A stretch of DNA of 64,000 nucleotides from Hyalangium minutum (lineage in GTDB: Bacteria > Myxococcota > Myxococcia > Myxococcales > Myxococcaceae), in the NCBI RefSeq assembly GCF_000737315.1, contig NZ_JMCB01000034.1:62001-126000 (forward strand), written 5' to 3'. Position numbers and translations under genes: made by a program. Shown in pieces: positions 33,172-49,601 of the stretch (the stretch's first letter is position 1; each line of letters begins with the position of its first letter). The notes below the pieces were generated by a model. That model searched no databases and was not told the DNA's origin. It saw only the letters and a list, made by a program, of their open reading frames with translations.

Positions 33172-36100
33172 CTAGCGAGGGAGCGAATGCGCGTCCAACC
33201 ATTGCGAGACCTGCTTCGCATCGGAGGCGCGGCGCTGGCGGCTCCAGAACTCTCGGGCTTGAGAGGCCAGTTCCACGGCGCGCGGCCTCTCCCCTCCTCC
33301 ATCCCATAGCGCCCGGGCCAGCGGAAATTGGACTCGCGCTCGCCTCGCCACGGGCGCAACCGCCAGCGCCCGCTCCAGCCACGGCCGGGCCTCCACCGGG
33401 CTCCCCTCCGCGAGCAGGAGCTTGCCCATCCCCAGCAAGGGGCCGAACCGCTCTGGATGGTCTGGCGGCAGCACCTTCTCCTGCAGCTCGATGGCGCGCG
33501 TGTACTTCTCTCGCGCCTCCGCGCCGCGGCCGAGATCTCTCAGCGCATCTCCCACGCTGCTCAACGAGAGAGCCACATCCGGGTTGTCGGGCCCCAGGGC
33601 CTTCAGCCGCACGGCCAGGGCGCGTTCCCCCAGCTGCCTGGCTTCCTCATACCTCCCCATCATGTCCAGGAGGCTGCTGAGGTTCGCGAGCAGCGTGGCG
33701 ACGCGTGGGTGCTCGGCTCCGAGCATCTTCTCCCGGAGCATCAGCGCCCGGGTGTGCATCTGATGCGCCTCTTCGTAGCGCCCCAGCTCCCCGAGAGCGA
33801 GGCCCAGGCTGGCGAGCGAGATGGCCACGCTCGGGTGCTCCGGGCCCAGCACCTTCTCTCGGATCGCCAGCTCGCGCGCGAAGGCGGCTCGCGCCTCTTC
33901 GGATCGCCCCAGCTCCATGAGAGCGTTCCCCAGGATGTTGAGCGAGGAGGCCACGGCCCGGTGGTCGGGCCCCAGCAGCTTCTCCCGGATCGCCAGCCCT
34001 CGCACGAGGGGGGCTCGCGCCTCTTCAAATCGGCCCAGATTCAGGAGGGAGAGCCCCAGATTGTTGAGCGCAACGGCGACGTCCGGGTGCTCGGAGCCGA
34101 GCGCCTTTTCCTGGATCGCCAGCGCCCGCGCGGCGGCCGCGTGCGCTTCCTCGTACCGGCCCAGATCCCCGAGAACGAGCCCCAGGTTGTTGAGCGAGGA
34201 GGCCACGGCCGGGTGCTCGGGGCCCAGCGTCTTCTCTCGGAGCACGAGCCCACGGGCGAAGGCGGCGCGCGCCTCTTCATGGCGGCCCAGATCCCAGAGC
34301 TCCGCGCCCAGGCTGTTGAGCGCGGCCGCCACGCTCGGATGCTCGGGACCCAGCACCTTCTCCCGGATCGCCAGCACGCGCTCAGCCATCTGGCGCGCCT
34401 TCTCGTATTGGCCCTGCTTGCTGAACACGATGGCCAGATCGCTCAAGGAGCTGGCCACCTCCGGGTGCTCGGGGCCCAGCACCTTCTCCCTGAGCGCCAG
34501 CGCGGCCTCGCACTCTCGTAGGGCTTCGTCATACCGGCCCAGCTCGATCAGCACGAGGCCGAGATTGGTGAGCGCAGAGGCGCGGATCCGGTCATCATCC
34601 GCCAGATCCACGAACTGCTCCACCGTGGGCCGCAGCGACAGCGCCTCTTGCAGGCGCCCCATGTGATAGCCCACCACCGAGACCCGTGCGCTCCAAGCTC
34701 GGGCCAGCGTCGCCATGTCCTTGCCCCGCGCCGCCGCGGTCATCGTCTGATGGAGCCGCTCCTCCGCCCCCTTGTAGTCGCCCGCCTCGCTGCGCAGCTG
34801 GGCCGACAGCAACAACGTGCGCGCCAGCAACGGCGCGTACCCCACCGGCTCTACCTGCGGCACCAGCTCATCCGCTCGCGCCACTCCCTGCTTGAACTTG
34901 CCGGCCGCCAGCAGCACCTCCAGTCGGTCCACCTGCTCCTGCAACGCGTCGACTCTCGCGCGCACCGTGGGCTCTTCGGGCGGGGGCACCGCCGCCGTCA
35001 GCGCCTTGGCATCCATGCAGTACTCCAAAGGCGGCAGCGCCTGCACCGCCTGCACCGCCTTGCCCACCAACTCCTCATCCGGCGCCTGCGTCAGCAGCTC
35101 CGTCAGCGCTCTGAGCTGGCTGCGCCGCCTCTCCAGGCACATCTCCTCGCGCACCCACAAGCTCTCCGCTCTCGCCTCTCCCTCTCGACTCACTCCCAGG
35201 CACACCTCGGTGCGCTGCTTCACCCACCTCCCAGCGTACGCCTCCAGCCCCTTCACCACTCGCTCCGCCGTCTCCGGCGCGTACGGCAGACCTGTCGCCA
35301 CCAGCGCCTGCCTCACCTTCTGCTTCACTGCCTCGTCCCACACACCCGCAAGGTGATGCCCCAACCCGTCGCACGGCTGCTGCCGGTCCGCCCAGCCCCA
35401 CACCGCCAGCACACCCAACAACACCGTTACGCTCGTCACAGCCCCCTTCCTCACACGCTCGCGACTCTTCACCTCGGGGTCCGCCGACAGCGCCTTCAAC
35501 ACCTCTCCCATCGACGACGGACGGCGCTCCGGCTCGCTCTGCAAACCTCGCAGCACCGTGCGCGCCACCCACGCTGGCACCGCTGCTCCCTCCGGCACTC
35601 GCGCCTTCCCCGCTCGCTGCGCCTCCCTCAGCTCAGACACCGTCGCCGCCTCATACGGCACCCTTCCGTAAAGCCCCTCGTACAGCGATACGCAGAATGC
35701 ATACAGGTCGCTGCGCGCGTCTTCCCTCTTCCCTTGGAACTGCTCCTCCGCCATGTAGGCGGGTGTTCCCATCCACCTCTCCCCACCCCGCGTCAGCGGC
35801 GCTATCACTCCCGTGGCCGCTGGCAACGGCGACAGCCCTGGCTCCTCACTCTCGAGGGCCACGGGGCCCAGCCTCGCCAGCCCGAAGTCCGTCACTCGTG
35901 CGCGCCCATCCGCTCCCACCAGCACGTTGTCGGGCTTGAAGTCATGATGGATCAGCCCTGCCTCGTGCGCCGCCGCCAGCCCTCGTCCTGCCGCAAGGTA
36001 CTGCCTCAGCACCTCCTTCCACCCTCGGCCCTGCTGCCACTGGCGCAGCGTCTGCCCCTCCACGTGCTCCATCGCGATGAACAGCGTCCCGTCCTCCAGC

Positions 36101-36508
36101 CGCCCCGCGTCGTACACACCCACCACGTTCGAATGGCTCAGCCGTGCCATCGCCTGAGCCTCACGCAGGAAGCGGCCTTGCTCCTCGTCCACCCGCGCGT
36201 TGGCTCCGCTCCAGGCTCGCAGCAGCTTGAGCGCCACGCGCCGGTCCAGCCGTGCGTCGTACGCCGAGAGCACCACTCCCATGGAGCCCTGGCCCAGCTG
36301 CTTCAGCACCGTGTACCGGCCCAGCATCGTCTGCCCAGGTTGCGGCAGGGTGGGCGGCACGACCTCCTCCTCCGGCGCCTCGTACGGCCACGTGCCCACC
36401 CCCTCCTCCCGATCCCCTGGGGTGGAGTCCGGATCGCCACCCGCGGCCACCACCTCATCGCTGAGAGAGCCACCGCGTTCCTTCTCTGGCTGCTCGCCTT
36501 CGCTCATG
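33172..36508 (-). CDS. Ser/Thr protein kinase with TM segment and C-terminal TPR array
   Basis: GQGSMG, VALK, HHDFKPDN, DFG, GTPAYM; TM (VTVLLGVLAVWGW); nine 42-aa 'LGPEHPxVAxSL' TPR units. Confidence 0.93.
33420..34560 (-). repeat. Intragenic 126-bp (42-aa) TPR tandem repeats
   Basis: Nine units of REKxLGPEHPxVAxSLxxLG counted in the translation; boundaries approximate. Confidence 0.8.
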
Positions 36509-36552
36509 GCCCTCTCTCCGACCGCAAGCCGCAGCCGCAGGCTCACCCTCGC

Positions 36553-37914
<1,362 letters not shown>

Positions 37915-38045: not shown

Positions 38046-40667
38046 TCACCCTCCGATAAGACCGACTCCACCACCGGGAGGAACGAAGATGCTCCCGTCG
38101 CCCGGCAGAGCCGTGACCTGCGTGGGGCTCGACCGGTTGGTGGTCGTCCCCTCTCCGAGCTGGCCGTAGCTGTTGTAGCCGCAGGACCGGACGATGGCGC
38201 CCTTGTCCAGCGCCATCGTGTGATGGTGGCCACCAGAAGAGAGGTCCACGATAGAGCTCAAGAGGGTCGCCGCCGGCGCCGTGCGGTTGGTGGTCGTCCC
38301 ATCACAGAGCTGGCCATAGGTGTTGTAGCCCCAGCCCGACACGGTCCCATCCCTCCTCAAGGCCAACGTGGAGTAGCTCCTCGCGACGATTGCGATGACA
38401 TCGCCGAGGCTCAGGACCTGCACCGGCGACGAGCGGTTGGTGGTCGTCCCGTCTCCGAGCTGGCCGTAGTAGTTGTAACCCCAGGCCCTCACCGTGCCGC
38501 TCGTGGCCAGCGCCATCGTGTGGTACATGCCCGCAGAGACAGCGGCGATGCTGGGGAGTCCGGGGACCTGCACCGGCGACAGGCAGTCGGTGGTCGCTCC
38601 GTTGCCCAGCTGGCCGTAGGAGTTGTAGCCCCAGGTCCACACAGTGCCGTCCGCCTTCAGTGCCACCGTGTGGTAGATGCCCGCAGCGATGGAGATCACA
38701 CCGTTGAGGCCAGGGACCTGCGTCGGCGAGGAGCGAGAGATGTTCGTTCCGTTTCCGAGCTGGCCGTAGCCGTTGTAGCCCCAGGTCCACACGGTGCCGT
38801 CTGCCTTGAGCGCCACCGTGTGGTAGCCTCCGGGGGAGACCGCGATGACGCCCTCCAACCCGGGCACGAGCTGCGGCGTGGGGCTGTTGGTGGTCGTCCC
38901 GTTGCCCAGCTGGCCGTAGCCGTTGTAGCCCCAGGTCCACACGGTGCCGTCATCCTTCAGCACGACCGTGTGGTGGGTGCCCACCTCCGCGTCGACGACG
39001 CCGCTCATCCCCGTCAGCAGTGCAGGCGTGAGCCTGTTGGTGGTCGTCCCGTCGCCCAGCTGGCCGTAGGAGTTGTAGCCCCAGGTCCACAGCGCCCCGC
39101 CCTTCCCCACGGCCACCGAGTGGGCAGTGCCGCCAGCCGTCGAGACGATCCCGCTGACCACGACGGCCACGGGCGAGAGGCGCTGGGAGACGGTCCCATC
39201 TCCCAGCTGGCCGTAGTAGTTGTAGCCCCAGCCAAACAGGGTGTGAGGGTTCGTCACGACCAGCTGGCGCTTCTGGGCCACTGTGTGAGTGGCACCCGCG
39301 CCGAACATCTTGACGCCGGTCATCCCCGGGACCTGCACCGGCGTGGCGGAAGTGGTGGTGCTCCCGATTCCCAGCTGTCCGTTGTAGTTGGAACCCCAGG
39401 CATACAAGGTGCCATCCTGCCGCTTGGCCACGGAGTGGAAGGCGCCGGCGGCGATCTCGACGGCTTGGGTGAGGCCCGACACCTGCACCGGGAAGACGCT
39501 GTCGACGGTGGTCCCATTTCCCAGCTGGCCGTAGGAGTTGGAGCCCCAGCTCCACGCGGTGCCGTCGCTCTTCACGCTGACCGTGTGGTAGTAGCCTCCG
39601 GAGAGGGAGCGGACGCCGCTGATGCCCGCCACCTGTACGGGCGTCAACCGGGTGAGGGTGGTCCCGTCCCCCAGCTGCCCGTTGGCGTTGGATCCCCAGG
39701 CCCAAGCGCTTCCGTCCTTCTTCACGGCCACCGTGTGGAGGTAACCCGCGGCGATGCCGAAGACGCCGCTGAGACCGGACACCTGCACGGGCGTCAGGCG
39801 GCTCGTGGTGGTCCCATCCCCGAGCTGGCCGTAGCCGTTGTAACCCCAGGCCCACACGGTCCCGTCCGCCTTCAGCGCCACCGTCCGAGCGTAGAAGGTC
39901 GCCACCGCGACGACGTCGGTCAGGCCGGGCACCTGCCTGGGCACCGCATGGAGCGTGGTGGTGCCATCTCCGAGCTGGCCGCTGGAGTTGTACCCCCAGG
40001 TCCACACGCTCCCATCCTCCGTCACCGCCGCCGAGTGCGTGTCCCCGGCCGACACGGAGACGACGTGGCTCACCCCCCTCACCCTCGTGGGAGAATTGCG
40101 CTGGGTCCTCTCGCCGTTGCCGAGCTGGCCATAGGTGTTGTAGCCCCACCCCCACACAGAGCCGTCCGACTTCACCTCCAGCGTGTGGTTGCCGCCGAGG
40201 CTCAGGCTGGGACAGAACTGGACGACGTTCCGGAACACCGTCTTGGGCAGGTTGTTGCAGTAGCTGCGATTGCCATTGCTGTCGATGATCATCGGGTAGG
40301 CCTTCACCTCGAAGCCGTGCACCCCGCAGCCCACCCCGGCCTCGCTGAAGAACCACTCCCCCGTCTCTCCCACGCGCTCGTCGACCGCATGCAGCGTGCC
40401 GTCGACGTAGTACTCGAGCTTCGCGGCATTGGCCCCATTGATGGCCGTCCAGGTTCCCGCGCCGGCCAGCTCGCCCTCGAAGGAGCTCACGCCTTCCAGC
40501 GAGAGGTCGTCGATGGCCGCCCCCGACGAGCACAGCGCCGACTCCTGGGTCCCCAGCGTCTCCTCCGGGCCGATCCCTCCCTCTTCGGGAGGAGCACCAC
40601 AAGCCGCCAGCAGCACCGAGGCCAATACCGCCAACACATCCGAACGCTTCAGGTCTCTCTTGAGCAT
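38046..40667 (-). CDS. RCC1/BLIP-II repeat lipoprotein with N-terminal Ig-like domain
   Basis: Lipobox LLAAC; 14 'WGxNxxGQLG' repeats; start set at ATG 40667. Confidence 0.9.
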   Translation of the reverse strand: MLKRDLKRSDVLAVLASVLLAACGAPPEEGGIGPEETLGTQESALCSSGAAIDDLSLEGVSSFEGELAGAGTWTAINGANAAKLEYYVDGTLHAVDERVGETGEWFFSEAGVGCGVHGFEVKAYPMIIDSNGNRSYCNNLPKTVFRNVVQFCPSLSLGGNHTLEVKSDGSVWGWGYNTYGQLGNGERTQRNSPTRVRGVSHVVSVSAGDTHSAAVTEDGSVWTWGYNSSGQLGDGTTTLHAVPRQVPGLTDVVAVATFYARTVALKADGTVWAWGYNGYGQLGDGTTTSRLTPVQVSGLSGVFGIAAGYLHTVAVKKDGSAWAWGSNANGQLGDGTTLTRLTPVQVAGISGVRSLSGGYYHTVSVKSDGTAWSWGSNSYGQLGNGTTVDSVFPVQVSGLTQAVEIAAGAFHSVAKRQDGTLYAWGSNYNGQLGIGSTTTSATPVQVPGMTGVKMFGAGATHTVAQKRQLVVTNPHTLFGWGYNYYGQLGDGTVSQRLSPVAVVVSGIVSTAGGTAHSVAVGKGGALWTWGYNSYGQLGDGTTTNRLTPALLTGMSGVVDAEVGTHHTVVLKDDGTVWTWGYNGYGQLGNGTTTNSPTPQLVPGLEGVIAVSPGGYHTVALKADGTVWTWGYNGYGQLGNGTNISRSSPTQVPGLNGVISIAAGIYHTVALKADGTVWTWGYNSYGQLGNGATTDCLSPVQVPGLPSIAAVSAGMYHTMALATSGTVRAWGYNYYGQLGDGTTTNRSSPVQVLSLGDVIAIVARSYSTLALRRDGTVSGWGYNTYGQLCDGTTTNRTAPAATLLSSIVDLSSGGHHHTMALDKGAIVRSCGYNSYGQLGEGTTTNRSSPTQVTALPGDGSIFVPPGGGVGLIGG
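38130..40200 (-). repeat. Intragenic ~150-bp RCC1 tandem repeats (14 units)
   Basis: Recurring plus-strand 'tggccgtag..gttgtagccccag' blocks, each matching one in-frame RCC1 blade. Confidence 0.85.
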
Positions 40668-40680
40668 GGTCTCTCCCCTC

Positions 40681-40696
40681 TGCACTCGCCACGCCA
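40681..40696 (-). promoter_or_regulatory. Candidate sigma54 -24/-12 promoter for the RCC1 gene
   Basis: Minus strand TGGCGTGGCGAGTGCA (GG-N10-GC). Caveat: predicted +1 is only ~3 nt from ATG 40667. Confidence 0.35.
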
Positions 40697-40792
40697 GCCG
40701 TGGCGGCCAACCATGGCTCCCTGCTTTTCCAGCGATTTCCTTGGGTTTCCTATTTACGGGTTTCGCCAGAGAGGGCCTCTGGCGGAGGCCCC

Positions 40793-40844
40793 TGGTCACA
40801 GCAGTAGCCAGGCCCAGGGCAGGCCCTGATCACAGCTGTTATCA
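40793..40844. promoter_or_regulatory. Pair of palindromic upstream boxes (putative bEBP sites)
   Basis: TGGTCAC-AGCA-GTAGCCA (40793-40810) and TGATCAC-AGCT-GTTATCA (40827-40844). Confidence 0.45.
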
Positions 40845-40872: not shown

Positions 40873-42400
40873 TCAGTACTGGCCCTTCAGCGTGGTGGTG
40901 TAGCTGGTGAAGGCGCGGAGTTGGACGAACCAGGTACCCGGAAGCGGGTTGGGCAGGGTGCACGTCTCGTTGTTGCCCTTGCGCAGGGGCCGACACTGGT
41001 AGGCGTACGTCTCTGGCAGCTGGCCATAGCGGACGTAGAGGTCCGCGTCTCCCGTGCCTCCGGAGAGGGTGAAGACCACCGAGGGCCGCCCGGCCGGGAC
41101 CTCCAGCTTGAAGTTCTTCTGGCCGCCGGTGATGTCGGACACACTTGTTGCCACCCCGTTGGCAATGGGCGTGGCCTGGGGGCGCTTGTACAGCAACCGG
41201 TTGGGCGAGGTCGTGTCAAAGACATCCAGCTGCACCTGATCCACGCTCGCATCGGCGATCAAGCGAGCAGGGATGCCGGCGGGCAAGACGCCCTGGGACA
41301 GAAGGATGGCCGCCAAGCCGCTCACGTGAGGTGTGGCGAACGAGGTCCCCTCGACGTTCGTCCAGGCCTCGTCACTGAACATCGCCGCGGATTTGATGTT
41401 CGCACCGGGAGCCCAGAGGTCCAGACATTCTCCAAAGTTGGATCCATTGAAGCCGCTCGACCAGCGCGTCTGCGCCTCGTCGATCGCGCCCACGGTCAAG
41501 ATGCGCTCCCGGAACGGGTGGGTGGCGTCCGGCTGGAGACGGGCCGGCGAGCAGGTGCAGGCGTTCAGGCCGGCATTCCCCGCTGCGACCACCAGGACGA
41601 GCCCGGGATTGCTCGCCATGACATCCGCGGCCGCATCGAGCGGTGCGAACGGGCTCGTGGTGGTGAAGCTCAGGTTGACGATGGCCGGCGTGACGGCGTT
41701 GTTCGCCACCCACTCCATCGCTTGCACCAGCCCATCAACCGTCGCCTCGCCCAACTGGTTGAACGCCTTGACCGAGTTCAAACGGACCTTCTTGGCGACA
41801 CCGTACGTCTTGCCTCCAATGATCCCCGCCACGGCGGTACCATGCCCGGAGAAGTCATCCCCGAACTCCGTGGTGTTGTTGAACGCGACCTGGGCGCGCC
41901 CTTCGAACTCCGAGTGCGATGCCCGGATGCCCGTGTCGATGATGTAGACGTTGACGCCCGTCGCGTCTTCGGCCTGGTAGCTGTTGCTCAGCGGCAGCCG
42001 CTCCTGGTCGATCCGATCCAGGTTCCAAGGCGCTGGAGACTGGACGCCCGACACCCTGACGATGCCGTTCTCCTGGACGTACTCCACCTGGGGATCCTCG
42101 GCCAGCGCCCGAGCCTGCTCCTCGTTGGCGGAGATGAGGAAGCCGCGAAAGGCGGTCTCGTGGGTGGTGAGGACACGTGCGCCGTACGGCTTGGCCAGCG
42201 CATCTGCCCTCAGCGCCATGCTCATCAGACCCCGTGCGGGCTTCTCCTTGAGGACGACGAGGTACTCGCCCTTCACGGGCTCCGGGGACCTCACCAGCTT
42301 GCCCTGCTCCGGCACCCGAGGTGGCGCAGCGAGCGCCCCCATCGAGGTCAGGACGAGACACGCGGTGATCAACCTGCTCCAGCTCTTCATGCTTGGCATC
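40873..42400 (-). CDS. Secreted S8 subtilisin-like serine protease (I9 propeptide, C-terminal PPC domain)
   Basis: IIDTG, GHGTAVAG, GTSFATPHV triad; PPC 'LSGGTGDADLYVRYG...GTWFVQL'. Confidence 0.95.
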
Positions 42401-42424
42401 TGTTCTCTCTTTTCAATCATTGGG

Positions 42425-43213
42425 TCAGGGAGCTGCGGCACGGCGCACCTGTGCTTGAAGGCTCAGCTCCTGCTCCTTCACGAGCCGGCGCTGGTTGTGC
42501 GCAGCGATGTACTGCAACAGCTTCTCGAGCGAGGTCCCCTTCGCGGCTTCGACCAGGGCACGAGCTCTCTCGGGCTCTTGATCCGCGAAGATCTCGTAGA
42601 GCTCCATTCGGGTCGCGGCCATCGAGCGCCTGGCGCTCAATGACAGCTCCGGGCTGAAGGAGTCCGCCAGGATGATGCCTTCGACGGTGGACACCCACTG
42701 CTCGCGAGCGGGGTTCTGTCTCCAGGCCAATGCCTCGCGCAGGTAGTCGATCCGCATCAGGCGCTTGATGCTGGACTCCAGGGACTCCTCGGCTTCTGTC
42801 GAGGAGCCCAGCGTCCGGCGCAGCTGCTCATACATCCGCGTGTCGGCGAGCAGCGCCTCGTAGTCCTTCCGTCCATTGGAATCGAGGAGGATGTGCTCGC
42901 GGAAGTAATCGAACCGCGCCAGCTCCGGCTCCGTCTTGAAGAGCTTCGCCTTCATCACGTCGGTCGCCGTGGTGAACTCGCCGTGCTCCCCTTCCTCTCC
43001 TGGAACCTCCTCGGGCGCCGCGAGCAGGGCGGGGGGAGGAGGCACGGCGGGCCGCTCCGGCACCGCGACACGAGCCGGTGCCGGAGGAGTGTTCTCCCCC
43101 CTCACCGGGGCAGCCCTGATGAAGGCGGAGTCCTCTGGGCTGTCCAGCGCCGCGACGATGAACGCCAGCGCCACGAGCCCCGCAATGACAAACAGATACC
43201 GGCTGATCTTCAT
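42425..43213 (-). CDS. Membrane-anchored helical hypothetical protein
   Basis: N-terminal TM, Pro-rich linker, helical domain; 21-24 nt gaps to both neighbours on the same strand. Confidence 0.75.
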   Translation of the reverse strand: MKISRYLFVIAGLVALAFIVAALDSPEDSAFIRAAPVRGENTPPAPARVAVPERPAVPPPPALLAAPEEVPGEEGEHGEFTTATDVMKAKLFKTEPELARFDYFREHILLDSNGRKDYEALLADTRMYEQLRRTLGSSTEAEESLESSIKRLMRIDYLREALAWRQNPAREQWVSTVEGIILADSFSPELSLSARRSMAATRMELYEIFADQEPERARALVEAAKGTSLEKLLQYIAAHNQRRLVKEQELSLQAQVRRAAAP

Positions 43214-43234: not shown

Positions 43235-44329
43235 CTAAGGGATGACGTCGGTGGGCACGCCATAGAGGATGATGCGGTTGATGTAGCGCACCTCGTCGTT
43301 CTGGAACCGCACGGAGCCCACCAGATAGCCCTGAGCCACGAGGATGTTGGACACCAGATCCGTCGACACTGGCGCGATGTTGTAGACCTTCCCGAAGTAG
43401 GTGGTCCTCTGAATGTCCACGATGGGATCCAGGGTGCCATCCGCCTTCACCAGCTCGTCGCCCACCTTGAGGGTCTGCGCCTGCACGATGCGGCCCTCGC
43501 CGTTGATGACAGGATGCTCGAGGGTGATGCTGAGCCGGCCGCCAGACTGGGTGGTGATGATGCAGAGCTTCTGCTCCGCATCGCGGAGCTCTCGCGTGTA
43601 GCTATAGGTGCTGTTCTGGTGCAGCCGCAGGTTGTCGAGCGTGGAGTCCGGGGTCAGCGTGATCAGGTCATCGCGCAGTGAGTTCATCGCGTCGAGGATG
43701 GGCACCTCTCCGCTGGAGAAGAGGATCTTCTGCTCGGGGGTGTAGCAAGCCGCCTCGCAGTAGCCGTTCACATGGGAGGGAGTGAAGACCGGCTGGGTGC
43801 TCTCCTTATCGAGATAGAACATGCAGTCCTCGAGATTTTTGTGAGGGAAGAGCTGGATGTTGTCCTCGGAGGTGATGTCCGACGAGGTGCTGAAGGTGGG
43901 GTAGAGCTGACGCCCCTTCCTCCGCCACGAGTCCCGCGACCACTGGAAGTAACCGTTGAGATCCGTCGTCTGGTAGGTGGGGCCCGACAGGTACAGGGCC
44001 ATCATGGCGGAGGTGTTCATCTTGAAGAGGTAGTCCGGGCCCGTGAACGCGCCCTCACCCTCCGGGTTCTTCTCCGGATCGGCCTCCAGATAGTCCTTCA
44101 GCGTCCCGCCCCCCGCGGCAGCCTGGCCCGTGTTGAAGAAGGCTGCCGGATCCCCGACGTTCTGGAGCGTCCCGCACTTGCGAGCCCACTCGACTCGAGC
44201 CGCCGCCGCCGCATTCGTACTCAGGCTGTCGACAGTGCATCGAGCCGTGAGGATGGGCTGCGCGAGCACCTGCATCGGCAACAGCGCCCCCACCGCCAAG
44301 GCGATGGCACCCCAGATTCTATTGAACAT
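43235..44329 (-). CDS. Secreted protein with C-terminal Hint autoprocessing domain
   Basis: Signal peptide; Hint block A C195-YTPEQKI, block B 'SITLEHPV', 'LKVGDELV', block F 'KVYNI...NILVAQGYLVGS'; 25-aa tail. Confidence 0.88.
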   Translation of the reverse strand: MFNRIWGAIALAVGALLPMQVLAQPILTARCTVDSLSTNAAAAARVEWARKCGTLQNVGDPAAFFNTGQAAAGGGTLKDYLEADPEKNPEGEGAFTGPDYLFKMNTSAMMALYLSGPTYQTTDLNGYFQWSRDSWRRKGRQLYPTFSTSSDITSEDNIQLFPHKNLEDCMFYLDKESTQPVFTPSHVNGYCEAACYTPEQKILFSSGEVPILDAMNSLRDDLITLTPDSTLDNLRLHQNSTYSYTRELRDAEQKLCIITTQSGGRLSITLEHPVINGEGRIVQAQTLKVGDELVKADGTLDPIVDIQRTTYFGKVYNIAPVSTDLVSNILVAQGYLVGSVRFQNDEVRYINRIILYGVPTDVIP

Positions 44330-44389: not shown

Positions 44390-46444
44390 CTACGGAGAGG
44401 AGCGCGGAAGGGAGCCGCCAGTCGTGGGCATGGCGACGAAGCTCGCGGCCGCCTTCCGGAGATCCGGGTTCGGATCGTGCTCGCTGGCCCAGGCCAGCAG
44501 GGGCAGCGCCTCCGGCACGGCCGCGCGCTGCTCTCCGAGGAGGTGGATCACGTCGACCCGGACTCCGTTGGTGGGATCCATGCGCAGCGCCTGCGCCAGA
44601 GCGGGGAGCAGGGGCGCCAAGGGCCGGAAGCCGCTGGCGAAGACGGCGACCCGCCGGACCTCGGGGGCGGGATCCTTGAGCATGAACTCGGACAGGAGCT
44701 GGTCGGCGCGGGGATCCGGGATGACGCGCAGCGCCTCGAGGGCGGCCTGGCGAATCTGGGGATCCGCGGATCGGAGCGCATCCTCGAACGTGCTCAGCGC
44801 GTCCGGCGAGCGGGTGTTGCCCAGGGTCCGCAGCGCCAGCGCCTGCTGCTCCGCATTGGAGGCCGTGCTGTACTCGCTGTTGAGCTCGTGGACGAGGGCC
44901 TCCGTACCCTTCGCGTCCGTGTCGGAGAGCTGGAAGGCGGCATTGCCGAGCGCCAGCTTCGCCGTGTCCCGGAGCATCCCGTCCGCGTCGTTCCTCGCGC
45001 CACGCAGGGCGTCCAGGCCCTCGCGGGTGGGGTCCTTCGCCACTCCCAGCGCGGCCACCGCGTCCATGCGGATGTCCGTGGGAATGGACTGATCGCCGCA
45101 GACCTCCGCCAGGGACTGGATGGCCTCGCGGGTGCTGGCCGCGGAGAGCGCGCCGAGCATGGGGCTGGCAGCGATCGGATCCATCCCCGCGCGAATGATG
45201 CCGGGGACCTTGAGGGCCTCGGAGGGGTGGAGCATGAAGAGGGCGCGGAGCTGCTCCAAGGCCTGGGTGCGGGCATCATCCTTGGCCTGGGGATCTTCCG
45301 GGAGCGAGCGCAGCTCCTTGACCAGGGTGTCGAAGTCCTTGCCCTTCAGCACCTGGCGGTACTGCTCCATCGGGTCCTGCTCCATGCCCTGGAAGGCCGC
45401 CATGGAGGCGGTGCTCAGAGAGGCCCGGCGCGCCATGAAAGTGCCGATCAGCGTCGGATCCGGGCGGCGCTCCAGCAGGCTCAGGCTCAGGGACGACTCA
45501 TACGTGGTGGGAGGCATGGCCTGGCCCGCCTCCATCTCCACCCGCTCCCGCCCCTCGAGCGAGCGCGCCCAGAGATCGCGCTCCAGCTCGAAGGTGCTCG
45601 AGGCGCTCACGGTGATGTGGATCTGGCCAGTCAGAGGCTCGAGCCCCAACGGGGACGCCACGTGGGAGTAGGACTCCTTGCGCTTCTCGAAGCGGCCGGA
45701 GGCCAGGCGCTGATACACGGCATGGTAGCGGCCCGTGGTGTCGTACTCCTCGGCGCTCCAGGTGGCGCCCGGCACACCAGCCACGACGAACTGCGAACTC
45801 GCCACGACTCCCCGGAGGATGTTTCGCACGAGCGGATCCGTCGCCTGCTCGAAGTGCGTGAACGTCGCCAGACCGGTCTTGTCGTACGTGAGGAAGAAGG
45901 GAAGCTGAAGGGCTGCGGACAGGCTGCGCTGGACGTCGGGGGCCAGGGGGCCCGCGCCGCCAACGTCCACCGTCAGCGAGGAGAGCTTGATGTTCACCCG
46001 GGCATCGACGCGCTCGGCGTCGACAGAGACGACACCCACGTTCCACTCGCCCCGGAGGTTGAACCTCATCGAGGGCAGCGCCTGCGCGCCAGGCTGTGCC
46101 GGGCGAAAGGTGAGCTTCTGATCAGCGCTCAGGGAGTACCGGTAGAGCATCCCAGGGGTCCACGCGCGAGTTCCCGTGGAGGGCTTGGAGGACACGGCCG
46201 GGGCCGGCGCCGACGGGCCTCCGGCCGAAGGGGCTGCAGCCTGAGAGGACTGCGATTCCTGGGAGGGAGCCTCCGCAGAGGACGGGGACGCAAGCGCCCA
46301 CAGCCCCAGGAGACTGACAGCCAGGAGCGCGAGCGTCACCCCGAAGAGGACGCGTGCGCGCTGACCCGCCAGGAGGCCTCCTGGGGTCGACGCCTGTCCC
46401 ACGACAGCGATTGGCTTGCTGCTCACGTTGCCCGACTTCCGCAT
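44390..46444 (-). CDS. HEAT-repeat protein with vitellogenin/MTP-like N-terminal beta module
   Basis: 'LPFFLTYDKTG...RNILRGVVASSQF...EEYDTTGRYHAVY' then alpha-helical repeats incl. 'ALRTLGNTRSP'; N-terminal TM/signal. Start 46444 or 46588. Confidence 0.75.
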   Translation of the reverse strand: MRKSGNVSSKPIAVVGQASTPGGLLAGQRARVLFGVTLALLAVSLLGLWALASPSSAEAPSQESQSSQAAAPSAGGPSAPAPAVSSKPSTGTRAWTPGMLYRYSLSADQKLTFRPAQPGAQALPSMRFNLRGEWNVGVVSVDAERVDARVNIKLSSLTVDVGGAGPLAPDVQRSLSAALQLPFFLTYDKTGLATFTHFEQATDPLVRNILRGVVASSQFVVAGVPGATWSAEEYDTTGRYHAVYQRLASGRFEKRKESYSHVASPLGLEPLTGQIHITVSASSTFELERDLWARSLEGRERVEMEAGQAMPPTTYESSLSLSLLERRPDPTLIGTFMARRASLSTASMAAFQGMEQDPMEQYRQVLKGKDFDTLVKELRSLPEDPQAKDDARTQALEQLRALFMLHPSEALKVPGIIRAGMDPIAASPMLGALSAASTREAIQSLAEVCGDQSIPTDIRMDAVAALGVAKDPTREGLDALRGARNDADGMLRDTAKLALGNAAFQLSDTDAKGTEALVHELNSEYSTASNAEQQALALRTLGNTRSPDALSTFEDALRSADPQIRQAALEALRVIPDPRADQLLSEFMLKDPAPEVRRVAVFASGFRPLAPLLPALAQALRMDPTNGVRVDVIHLLGEQRAAVPEALPLLAWASEHDPNPDLRKAAASFVAMPTTGGSLPRSSP

Positions 46445-46606
46445 GGGGGTGCTCCGAGTTGGCGGCTCTTGCCGCTTCAGTTTCAGTTCTGGTTTAGAGG
46501 GCGGGTGCCGCATCCTCAGCCGATCGCTCGACCGAGGAGACAGCACCCGGTTCATCCCGCCTGGCGACAGCCAATGCCTCTCGGGCACGGCCGTCGCGTG
46601 GCGGTA

Positions 46607-47791
46607 TCAGCCGCAGCCCAGGCTCGACATGGTGCCGCTGGAGTTGGCCAGGTTGAGGACCTTGGAGATGCCGGGCCAGTTGGCGATGGTGACGTTCCAG
46701 GTCTTCTTGAAGAAGAGGAAGTTGACCTTCACGAAGGCCTGCAGCGAGCCCTTGAGCGCGCTCAGGTTGAGGTCAGCCTTGAGGGACCAACTGGGCGAGC
46801 AGAGGGTCCAGCCGAGGCTGGCCGCGGCCTGCGCGGTGGCGTTGATCAGGGACAGGGAGCCGGACACGCCGAAGCTGGCGATGGCGACGTTCACCGCAGC
46901 GGAGGCCACCACGTTGGCCCAGCCGCCGGCGTAGGAGGTGATCGCGGCCAGCGCGGGGCTCACCTGGCCGTTCAAGCCCATCTTCACGCCACCGGTCAGC
47001 TGCGACTTCACGGTGACCGGCACGGGGCCGACCATGAACGACTTGGAGACGGAGAAGAACGAGCGGCTCCAGTTGATGGGGGTGGGCGCGAAGGTCCCAG
47101 CGAGGTTGGCGCTCCAGATCTGCGAGCCCAGGGCGTACAGCGCGGCGGTGCCGCTGTTGCAGCCGCCCTGCTGCCCACAGACGTACGAGCGGCCGCGGAC
47201 CAGCTCTTTCTCCGTGTTGAAGGCGGTGCCAAAGAGCCGGCCCTCGGCGAGCGCCTCTTCCTTCTTCGCCACGGTGCCGTTCGCCGGCGTCGCGGTGACG
47301 GAGGTGTTGACGTTGTAGCCCGCACCGAAGATGGAGTTACCGAACCGCTCCGTGCGCTGGTAGTAGACACTGACGGGAGTGACCGCCATCTGCCCGATGA
47401 GCTTCAGCCCGGCCCCGGTCTGCGTCGGCGGCGTCTCGGACGGAGGCGGCACGTTCGGCGTGCTGGCCTCGGGGATGGTGGCCTGGAGGTAGTTCACGTT
47501 CCGCCGGCCATCGTTGATGTCGAGGAGAATGGGCGCGTTGAGCAGCTGCGCCTCGTTGTTGACGACCGCGTCCTGCTCGGGCGGCGTGTAGGTCGCGTTC
47601 GCGTCGAATGGGAGGACCTGCGTCTCCCAGGGGATCCTGTTGTCGAGCTGCGTGTTGGACGGGTAGATGGTGTACGGGTACTTCACGCTGTCGACGACAT
47701 AGGGATTCGGGTCCTGGTAATCCTGCGCGGACGCGACGGTTGCGACGGTGACTGCCACAAGCGCGAATGCGCGCGATACTGCCTTCATCAT
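46607..47791 (-). CDS. Secreted beta-rich hypothetical protein
   Basis: Signal peptide MMKAVSRAFALVAVTVATVASA-Q with GAGGGG RBS; alternating amphipathic strands in the C-terminal half. Confidence 0.8.
   Translation of the reverse strand: MMKAVSRAFALVAVTVATVASAQDYQDPNPYVVDSVKYPYTIYPSNTQLDNRIPWETQVLPFDANATYTPPEQDAVVNNEAQLLNAPILLDINDGRRNVNYLQATIPEASTPNVPPPSETPPTQTGAGLKLIGQMAVTPVSVYYQRTERFGNSIFGAGYNVNTSVTATPANGTVAKKEEALAEGRLFGTAFNTEKELVRGRSYVCGQQGGCNSGTAALYALGSQIWSANLAGTFAPTPINWSRSFFSVSKSFMVGPVPVTVKSQLTGGVKMGLNGQVSPALAAITSYAGGWANVVASAAVNVAIASFGVSGSLSLINATAQAAASLGWTLCSPSWSLKADLNLSALKGSLQAFVKVNFLFFKKTWNVTIANWPGISKVLNLANSSGTMSSLGCG

Positions 47792-48206: not shown

Positions 48207-49601
<1,395 letters not shown>

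Follow-up and report, generated by a model that had tools for sequence, protein, structure and literature searches.

Large lipid transfer proteins (LLTPs), a superfamily that includes MTP, apoB, vitellogenin and apolipophorin, underlie lipoprotein assembly and yolk formation, and share a signature unit made of a β-barrel followed by an arc of α-helices. They have been presented as animal proteins (PMC1783640, PMC6717300). The binding and transfer of lipid by MTP have been mapped to its C-terminal domain, and its barrel and helices bind apoB and PDI (PMC6717300). Here we describe a bacterial protein that has the same N-terminal unit. Its gene lies on the minus strand, at 44390..46444, of a 64,000-nucleotide stretch of the Hyalangium minutum genome (assembly GCF_000737315.1, contig NZ_JMCB01000034.1, positions 62,001 to 126,000; hereafter the window), and encodes a product of 684 residues, the LLT-like protein. 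A preliminary description of the window, drawn from its letters alone, had proposed this protein as a prokaryotic member of a family usually regarded as animal. Matches by Pfam, by Foldseek and by a colinear hhalign alignment support that proposal for the N-terminal two-domain part of the LLTP architecture.

The fold of the N-terminal region, on which the preliminary description had let its proposal hang, was predicted with AlphaFold2. Folded alone, residues 90–352 form a confident β-barrel, with a predicted local distance difference test score (pLDDT) of 92.8 and a predicted template-modelling score (pTM) of 0.90. In a Foldseek search of PDB, its first seven matches are LLTP N-terminal barrels and nothing else, at E values of 3.8e-14 to 2.3e-8 and TM-scores (TMq) of 0.54–0.64. 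They include MTP (3.8e-14, TMq 0.64), the isolated apoB barrel 9BD8_A (9.4e-11, TMq 0.63), lipovitellin (2.1e-10, TMq 0.59) and bee vitellogenin (2.4e-9); an outer-membrane barrel comes eighth, at 4e-4 and a TM-score of 0.20. By the domain model, Foldseek and hhalign together, residues 93–352 (45389..46168, minus strand) are thus modelled as an LLTP-type β-barrel.

A model of the whole protein, built from a 41-sequence alignment (mean pLDDT 83.7, pTM 0.53), has a disordered N-terminus and a β-domain at residues 99–347, into which helices 169–179 and 204–217 are set. The helical arc follows directly (residues 357–671; 44432..45376, minus strand), with about 19 HEAT-like helices, running from residue 360 to 671 in the model, according to Pfam and to DSSP; this order, found also in the structural matches and in the colinear hhalign alignment, is that of LLTPs. 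The first ten PDB matches of the whole model are all LLTPs (E 1e-20 to 3e-10), each over roughly 640 aligned columns, among them MTP 6I7S (9.6e-21), lamprey lipovitellin 1LSH (2e-16), bee vitellogenin 9ENS (1e-13) and apoB100 9BD1 (1.3e-12). Designed HEAT proteins come after them, at E=3.6e-9 or weaker. In the structural comparison with lipovitellin and MTP that the preliminary description had recommended, LLTPs therefore rank top both for the whole model and for the barrel.

In sequence searches, the Pfam model Vitellogenin_N (PF01347) matches the LLT-like protein at E=2.2e-13, and its 50.1 bits exceed the gathering score of 24. The match pairs residues 370–629 with profile positions 302–582 of 590, that is, the helical half only, and the model also scores above its cut-off in 10 of 10 distant family members (27–65 bits). 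HEAT_2 (PF13646; E=4.9e-22, three stretches) and HEAT (PF02985; E=1.1e-8) match too, and HEAT-repeat membership is borne out by tandem helix-turn-helix repeats of about 30 residues that fit the HEAT models; the HEAT-repeat name given by NCBI is correct but covers only half of the protein. Designed alphaRep/HEAT proteins head the sequence matches in PDB, reaching E=1e-25 with a profile. The sole LLTP reached by plain sequence search is 1LSH; the single sequence finds it at E=0.0025 and a 41-sequence family profile at 3.5e-9, in the helices only. Matches of this kind would be expected of an ordinary HEAT-repeat protein joined to an unrelated β-domain, its Vitellogenin_N score being cross-talk between helical repeats, and so would the failure of the N-terminal domain alone to give an HMMER match to Pfam or PDB.

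That failure has a definite extent. A phmmer search of PDB sequences with residues 92–353 returned only a chance nanobody match, a profile of 26 myxobacterial N-terminal domains had no match in PDB at E up to 10, and a Pfam scan of 26 such domains gave no match to Vitellogenin_N. The barrel motif is beyond plain HMMER when searches start from the myxobacterial subfamily; finding it needed a 202-sequence profile, hhalign and the structure model. We built the 202-sequence bacterial barrel profile from the listed matches of a search of cluster representatives (see below). On the animal side, the query for human MTP agreed with its database entry at 100% identity, and the profile for MTP, which had mammals only, lacked depth. 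By hmmsearch, the barrel profile scores 17–25 bits in the best-scoring mammals and 11 bits in human MTP; in a PDB-sized search space this amounts to E values of 1e-4 to 0.04 for the listed top matches and 2.2 for human MTP. The alignment begins at MTP residue 31. By hhalign, the 202 bacterial barrels align with the MTP N-terminus motif to motif over 151 columns (probability 84%, E=7e-6), and the full-length family aligns with full-length MTP over 457 colinear columns, from MTP residue 29 to 515 (probability 94.9%, E=4.8e-8).

The motif block occupies residues 181–244 inside the barrel (45713..45904, minus strand) and reads PFF..D..G ... L.RG...S.QF ... W...E.D.TG.Y.A.Y. It pairs with MTP residues ~120–180: in the profile comparisons, bacterial PFF..D..G, L.R.L...Q and E.D.TG.Y.A.Y stand opposite RPTLLHLI-HGKV, NIKRGLASLFQ and EVDISGNCKVTYQ of MTP. 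Most of the invariant residues of the family fall within this block (G191, Q218, E233, G238 and Y244), which also holds the near-invariant W229, D235 and A242. In addition, a distant relative from a metagenome-assembled genome (MAG) of the Polyangiaceae, P0189, matches Vitellogenin_N at positions 77–150, the region of the barrel motif. Identity between the LLT-like protein and animal LLTPs is 13–18%, and the sequence comparisons suggest, weakly, that the N-terminal motifs of the two are in register. Taken with the models, they leave hardly any credence for a HEAT-repeat protein with an unrelated β-domain, an explanation that is largely refuted: the barrel by itself is significant only to LLTP barrels (E 1e-14 to 1e-8, TM ~0.6), the whole-model LLTP matches run 11 orders of magnitude ahead of HEAT proteins and cover both domains, the MTP alignment is colinear from residue 29 to residue 515, and P0189 reaches the barrel part of the Pfam model.

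The strings quoted in the preliminary description are all present in the protein: LPFFLTYDKTG (residues 181–191; 45872–45904), VRNILRGVVASSQF (206–219; 45788–45829) and EEYDTTGRYHAVY (232–244; 45713–45751) in the motif block, and ALRTLGNTRSP (537–547; 44804–44836) in the helices. The block was rightly located, with bounds of 45713–45904 rather than 45715–45910. The LLT consensus given there was correct in substance, as it aligns with the MTP block, except for its cysteine. At E.D..G.C...Y, EEYDTTGRYHAVY stands in the window and E.D.TG.Y.A.Y in the family consensus, neither of them with a cysteine; C449 is the only cysteine in the whole LLT-like protein. In animal LLTPs the motif cysteine forms a disulfide. 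Outside secreted animal proteins, this cysteine probably does not define the superfamily.

Beyond the arc, the bacterial protein stops short of what makes an animal LLTP a lipid carrier. The LLT-like protein ends 13 residues past its last helix, its model has no strands after residue 347, and no Pfam match to DUF1943 or to the MTP lipid-binding domain was found in it at E up to 10. Among the best 150 of 1,837 relatives, nearly all are 580–700 residues long, with the barrel at residues ~50–330. The family thus consists of barrel and arc only, without the C- and A-sheets that form the lipid cavity. Because these sheets are absent, membership does not imply lipid transfer, which does not follow from owning the N-terminal LLT unit.

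To describe the breadth of the family, we searched 1.84 billion representatives (clusters at 50% identity) with the barrel profile, listing the best 150 matches. The barrel family comprises 1,837 clusters at E up to 1e-3, of which 770 remain at E up to 1e-10. Loci were also located in genomes, one per species, by scanning for the family's most conserved motif, W-x3-E-x-D-x2-G-x-[YF]-x-A-x-Y, as a degenerate DNA pattern, and were filtered by hmmsearch with the barrel profile at E <1e-10; MAG labels are as deposited. The pattern gave at least 120 loci, about 50 of 120 being false, mostly in Paenibacillus, and removed by hmmsearch; at least 68 genome loci were kept. In Paenibacillus and Saccharibacillus (L007, L008, L013–L015 and ~25 more) the pattern falls at one conserved position with no barrel match, and these loci appear to belong to an unrelated conserved protein. 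Within Myxococcota, the retained loci include Polyangium sp. 6x1, Minicystis rosea DSM 24000, Myxococcus sp. 1LA and MAGs of Kofleriaceae, Haliangiales and Sandaracinaceae. Outside it, they occur in Planctomycetota, Verrucomicrobiota, Magnetococcales and Desulfobacterota; in Acidobacteriota, including Terracidiphilus and Bryobacteraceae; in Spirochaetota (Leptospirales and other spirochaete MAGs); in Cyanobacteria (Calothrix sp. CCY 0018 and a Leptolyngbyales MAG); and in Gammaproteobacteria (Pseudoalteromonas xiamenensis CGMCC 1.12157 and Paraperlucidibaca).

The LLT-like protein is therefore one member of a large multi-phylum family and not a myxobacterial oddity. Had its gene reached myxobacteria by recent transfer, as a piece of an LLTP gene from an animal, it would be uninformative on the origin of the family. 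Myxobacterial genomes are large and hold many eukaryote-like genes, and the window itself carries RCC1 repeats and Ser/Thr kinases, which would suit such a transfer. We nevertheless regard it as exceedingly unlikely, as the family numbers 1,837 clusters at 50% identity with members confirmed in many phyla, shares only 13–18% identity with animal LLTPs, and is accompanied throughout by a conserved, bacteria-specific partner gene. The relevance to the origin of the animal family that the preliminary description had pointed out is strengthened by this multi-phylum distribution.

The reading frame of the LLT-like gene is open to GTG 46588 and stops at 44390. We take ATG 46444 as the start, because GGAG sits 8 nt 5′ of it and because the resulting 684 residues agree in length with the database cluster representative and close homologues (666–684 residues; 650–680 for homologues in general). 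The region has a G+C content of 64–71%. The nearest relatives are from Hyalangium (81–83% identity), followed by Myxococcus, Archangium, Cystobacter, Corallococcus and Stigmatella, and several myxobacteria, such as Myxococcus qinghaiensis, C. fuscus and Hyalangium, have two copies of the gene. The M. xanthus orthologue is WP_171444777.1. Ahead of the barrel, residues 28–50 (46295..46363, minus strand) form a hydrophobic segment, a signal peptide or signal anchor by Kyte-Doolittle analysis, which peaks at 2.3 over residues 33–51; R29 and R31 precede this peak, and AlphaFold2 places a low-confidence helix at residues 28–48. A low-complexity linker rich in A, P, S and Q follows (residues 51–92; 46169..46294, minus strand), defined by its composition and by a pLDDT below 50 at residues 1–90. 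All inspected homologues have a hydrophobic segment and then an A/P/S-rich stretch. From this export or anchor segment and the flexible linker, we infer an extracytoplasmic position for the folded part, which the N-terminal helix may tether to the inner membrane.

Immediately upstream on the same strand lies a second gene (46607..47791, minus strand; open reading frame to 47872), which encodes an uncharacterised secreted protein, here called the partner. Its start is probably M28 at 47791, which gives 394 residues and a classic Sec-type signal peptide, MMKAVSRAFALVAVTVATVASAQ, at the N-terminus; a database protein of 394 residues is 98% identical. A conserved core of ~250 residues (46634..47389, minus strand) scores 239 bits against a 48-sequence partner profile and includes the motifs FGAGY, VGPVPV, ASAGV.G.L.L and KK.W..T...W.G. 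A, S, G, V, L and T abound in the core, and its hydrophobicity has a period of 2 in 67% of 9-residue windows as against 1.7% that are helix-like, a pattern that suggests amphipathic β-strands. The partner had no match in Pfam or PDB sequences, and in a profile search of 5.8 billion proteins its relatives were all named 'hypothetical' and had no Pfam domain. Elsewhere, the core is the C-terminus of far larger proteins with Laminin_G_3, PA14, B_lectin, β/γ-crystallin, TSP3 and Ig-like domains, which are typical of secreted surface- or glycan-binding proteins.

The two genes are found together across the family. We ran the 48-sequence partner-core profile on the 68 barrel-filtered loci, nine of which had too little upstream DNA to evaluate. 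In 54 of the remaining 59 (92%), spanning about eight phyla, the partner adjoins the LLT-like gene: immediately upstream on the same strand in 50, downstream in two and on the opposite strand in two. The partner was likewise adjacent in all seven contexts fetched by protein (7/7), which include Cystobacter fuscus, Stigmatella aurantiaca, Hyalangium gracile, two NCBI MAGs and a JGI contig. It lies upstream in the window, in L004–L006 and L127 and in most phyla, and downstream, the rarer order, in C. fuscus and S. aurantiaca (L001–L002) and in two MAGs (L124, L126); the order differs between paralogous groups. In Photobacterium halotolerans DSM 18316, a partner-core match (L022:459-1226, plus strand) is accompanied by no barrel above threshold in the 8 kb fetched; either the partner stands alone there, or the LLT-like gene is too diverged or lies outside the 8 kb.

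As a member of a lipid-carrier superfamily, the LLT-like protein could be thought to bind or shuttle lipid by itself, like a miniature MTP or vitellogenin, with the neighbouring gene incidental. In lipovitellin (1LSH), moreover, the helical arc turns its concave face to the lipid cavity and lines part of it. A lone lipid shuttle is nonetheless very improbable: the cavity-forming β-sheets are absent, the lipid binding and transfer of MTP reside in its C-terminal domain and not in its barrel or helices (PMC6717300), and a partner adjacent in 92% of evaluable loci is not incidental.

On our analysis, the LLT-like protein and the partner probably, if by no means certainly, form a two-protein complex outside the cytoplasm, in which the LLT-like protein serves as an MTP-like scaffold. 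It has the N-terminal unit of an LLTP, a β-barrel joined directly to a two-layer helical arc, and its gene and that of the partner constitute a conserved two-gene module, whose products, we propose, meet in an extracytoplasmic complex. The barrel and arc would act as a scaffold or holdase for the amphipathic, β-rich partner, much as these domains of MTP hold PDI and apoB, itself an amphipathic β-sheet protein, and the complex would handle something hydrophobic, either lipid or the partner's own membrane-seeking surface. The scaffold likeness to MTP describes what the protein works like and is distinct from membership in the family.

Several observations weigh against this proposal. Gene adjacency is the only ground on which we infer that the two proteins bind, and the partner-core profile detected no partner in 5 of the 59 evaluable loci. 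No open reading frame fusing the partner to the LLT-like protein was seen among the loci examined. The partner has no sequence similarity to any Pfam or PDB entry, and hhalign of its core against full-length MTP (the mammals-only profile), lipid-binding domain included, gave a probability of 0.1%. Full-length TM-scores of the LLT-like model to LLTPs are low (0.26–0.38, with a root-mean-square deviation of 13–21 Å), and because of these scores and a pTM of 0.53, the relative placement of barrel and arc in the model is uncertain. Lipid handling by the pair is conjectural.

The end use of such a complex may differ from lipid carriage. The partner could be a secreted toxin or adhesin, a membrane-inserting β-protein aimed by lectin-like domains, for which the LLT-like protein would serve as periplasmic chaperone, export helper or self-protection factor without any transport of lipid. 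Its Ser/Thr/Gly/Ala-rich core with strong β periodicity, its fusion elsewhere to Laminin_G_3, PA14, B_lectin, crystallin and TSP3 domains and its frequent secreted-protease neighbours (S8 in the window; M4, M1, astacin or trypsin elsewhere) are all consistent with this, and myxobacteria are a predatory lineage. Yet neither Pfam nor PDB gives the partner a match to any known family of toxins or pore-formers, and non-predatory lineages, cyanobacteria and acidobacteria among them, have the LLT-like family too. We consider a toxin or adhesin somewhat unlikely overall; it shares the scaffold or holdase step with the complex that we favour and differs from it only in end use, and within the scaffold model this end use is at least as likely as lipid carriage.

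We also considered whether the bacterial gene pair is a split, ancestral form of the animal lipid carriers. The β-sheet core of the partner would then be the counterpart of the LLTP cavity sheets and would dock in the arc to create a lipid cavity in trans, and the animal LLTPs, MTP first, would have arisen from the bacterial pair by gene transfer and fusion. Fusion of the rarer gene order, with the LLT-like gene before the partner as in Cystobacter, Stigmatella and the two MAGs, would yield the animal domain order. We offer this as a speculation that is distinctly unlikely to hold.

Within the 162 bp that separate the partner from the LLT-like gene, TTGGCTGTCGCCAGGCG (46558–46574, minus strand) has the GG-N10-GC spacing of a sigma54 −24/−12 promoter, with poor flanking bases, and nothing resembling a terminator was found on the minus strand of this gap. 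On the same strand, 60 bp downstream of the LLT-like gene, a gene at 43235–44329 encodes a 364-residue signal-peptide protein whose C-terminus has a weak, below-cut-off match to Pretoxin-HINT (E=0.007); a 366-residue gene holds the equivalent position in H. gracile, with none in Cystobacter, Stigmatella or more distant loci. It is followed by a 262-residue protein with a hydrophobic N-terminal segment and no Pfam match (42425–43213, minus strand) and by a secreted S8 subtilase that carries an I9 propeptide together with a PPC domain (40873–42441, minus strand), an order kept in H. gracile. Other family loci also neighbour secreted proteases (M4, M1, astacin or trypsin), which could be chance in protease-rich genomes.

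A few kilobases downstream, on the same strand, are a Ser/Thr kinase with TPR repeats (33172–36546) and an FHA-sigma54 enhancer-binding protein (36553–37914). Family members in Stigmatella (L002), a Polyangiaceae MAG (L005) and H. gracile (L127) are likewise flanked by genes for kinases and sigma54 activators; both kinds of gene are very abundant in myxobacteria, which limits the meaning of their nearness to LLT-like genes. Between the activator and the subtilase lies a 917-residue protein (38046–40799, minus strand) with about 14 RCC1 repeats, a eukaryote-like β-propeller (RCC1-like domain, E=3.5e-181); the open reading frame on the opposite strand (38220–40829, plus strand) has no Pfam match and is probably spurious. 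On the far side of the pair, an MBOAT acyltransferase and an ALGX-domain protein, a combination used for exopolysaccharide O-acetylation, precede the partner in H. gracile (L127:2724-5423, plus strand). The window has a fumarase on the other strand at this position (48267–49601, plus strand), and the neighbourhood is thus not conserved.

According to the preliminary description, annotation would call the LLT-like protein only a HEAT-repeat protein. This is true of NCBI ('HEAT repeat domain-containing protein') and does not extend to UniProt, where the automatic name 'Vitellogenin domain-containing protein' is given to the orthologues of M. xanthus, M. virescens, M. stipitatus and C. fuscus, or to IMG, which labels one 'Lipoprotein amino terminal region'. 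Precomputed Pfam results (version.29) name PF01347 'TPR_Vitellogenin', which suggests that the model has been narrowed to the helical part; in that case, the bacterial barrel would carry no Pfam label. No paper on bacterial LLTP homologues was found in the non-subscription literature searched. The bare domain label is thus already in databases, ahead of the literature; what appears to be new is the demonstration of LLTP identity for the barrel, the truncation, how large and widespread the family is, and its conserved partner.

To specialists in the evolution of lipoproteins, a bacterial LLT family would come as a surprise. The signature barrel-plus-arc unit occurs as a free-standing, apparently exported bacterial protein across many phyla, which makes a rooted phylogeny possible and with it an approach to the origin of animal lipid carriers. 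The pairing offers a handle on what barrel and arc do when no lipid cavity is attached to them, and the partner constitutes a second, entirely uncharacterised protein family.

Among the known systems, the PBS-lyase and alphaRep HEAT proteins resemble the C-terminal half of the LLT-like protein (HEAT_2 E=4.9e-22; alphaRep to E=1e-25) and are the basis of its NCBI name, but they have no N-terminal barrel and fall far below LLTPs in the whole-protein structure search. The N-terminal β-α1 region of apoB100 (9BD1, 9BD8, 9E9R) matches the barrel at E=9.4e-11 (TMq 0.63) and the whole model at E=1.3e-12. ApoB itself is a 4,500-residue belt round a lipoprotein particle, and its barrel binds the LDL receptor, which has no counterpart for the bacterial protein. 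Lipovitellin and vitellogenin (1LSH; honey bee 9ENS/9ENR) match the whole model at a Foldseek E value of 2e-16 and the barrel at 2e-10; vitellogenins are lipid-carrying proteins of 1,000–1,800 residues with C- and A-sheets, DUF1943 and vWD, parts that are absent from the LLT-like protein. Human MTP (6I7S/8EOJ) heads the structural matches of the whole model (E=9.6e-21) as well as those of the isolated barrel (E=3.8e-14, TMq 0.64), and has the barrel-then-arc order and the motif block in common with the bacterial protein. The two differ in that identity is 14–15%, the bacterial motif has no cysteine, and MTP carries a two-sheet lipid-binding domain of ~290 residues (PF19444) that the bacterial protein lacks. 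Their partners differ as well, PDI having a thioredoxin fold whereas the bacterial partner is an unrelated, β-rich secreted protein. MTP is an obligate heterodimer that uses its barrel and arc for protein binding (PMC6717300), an arrangement analogous to the one we propose for the bacterial pair.

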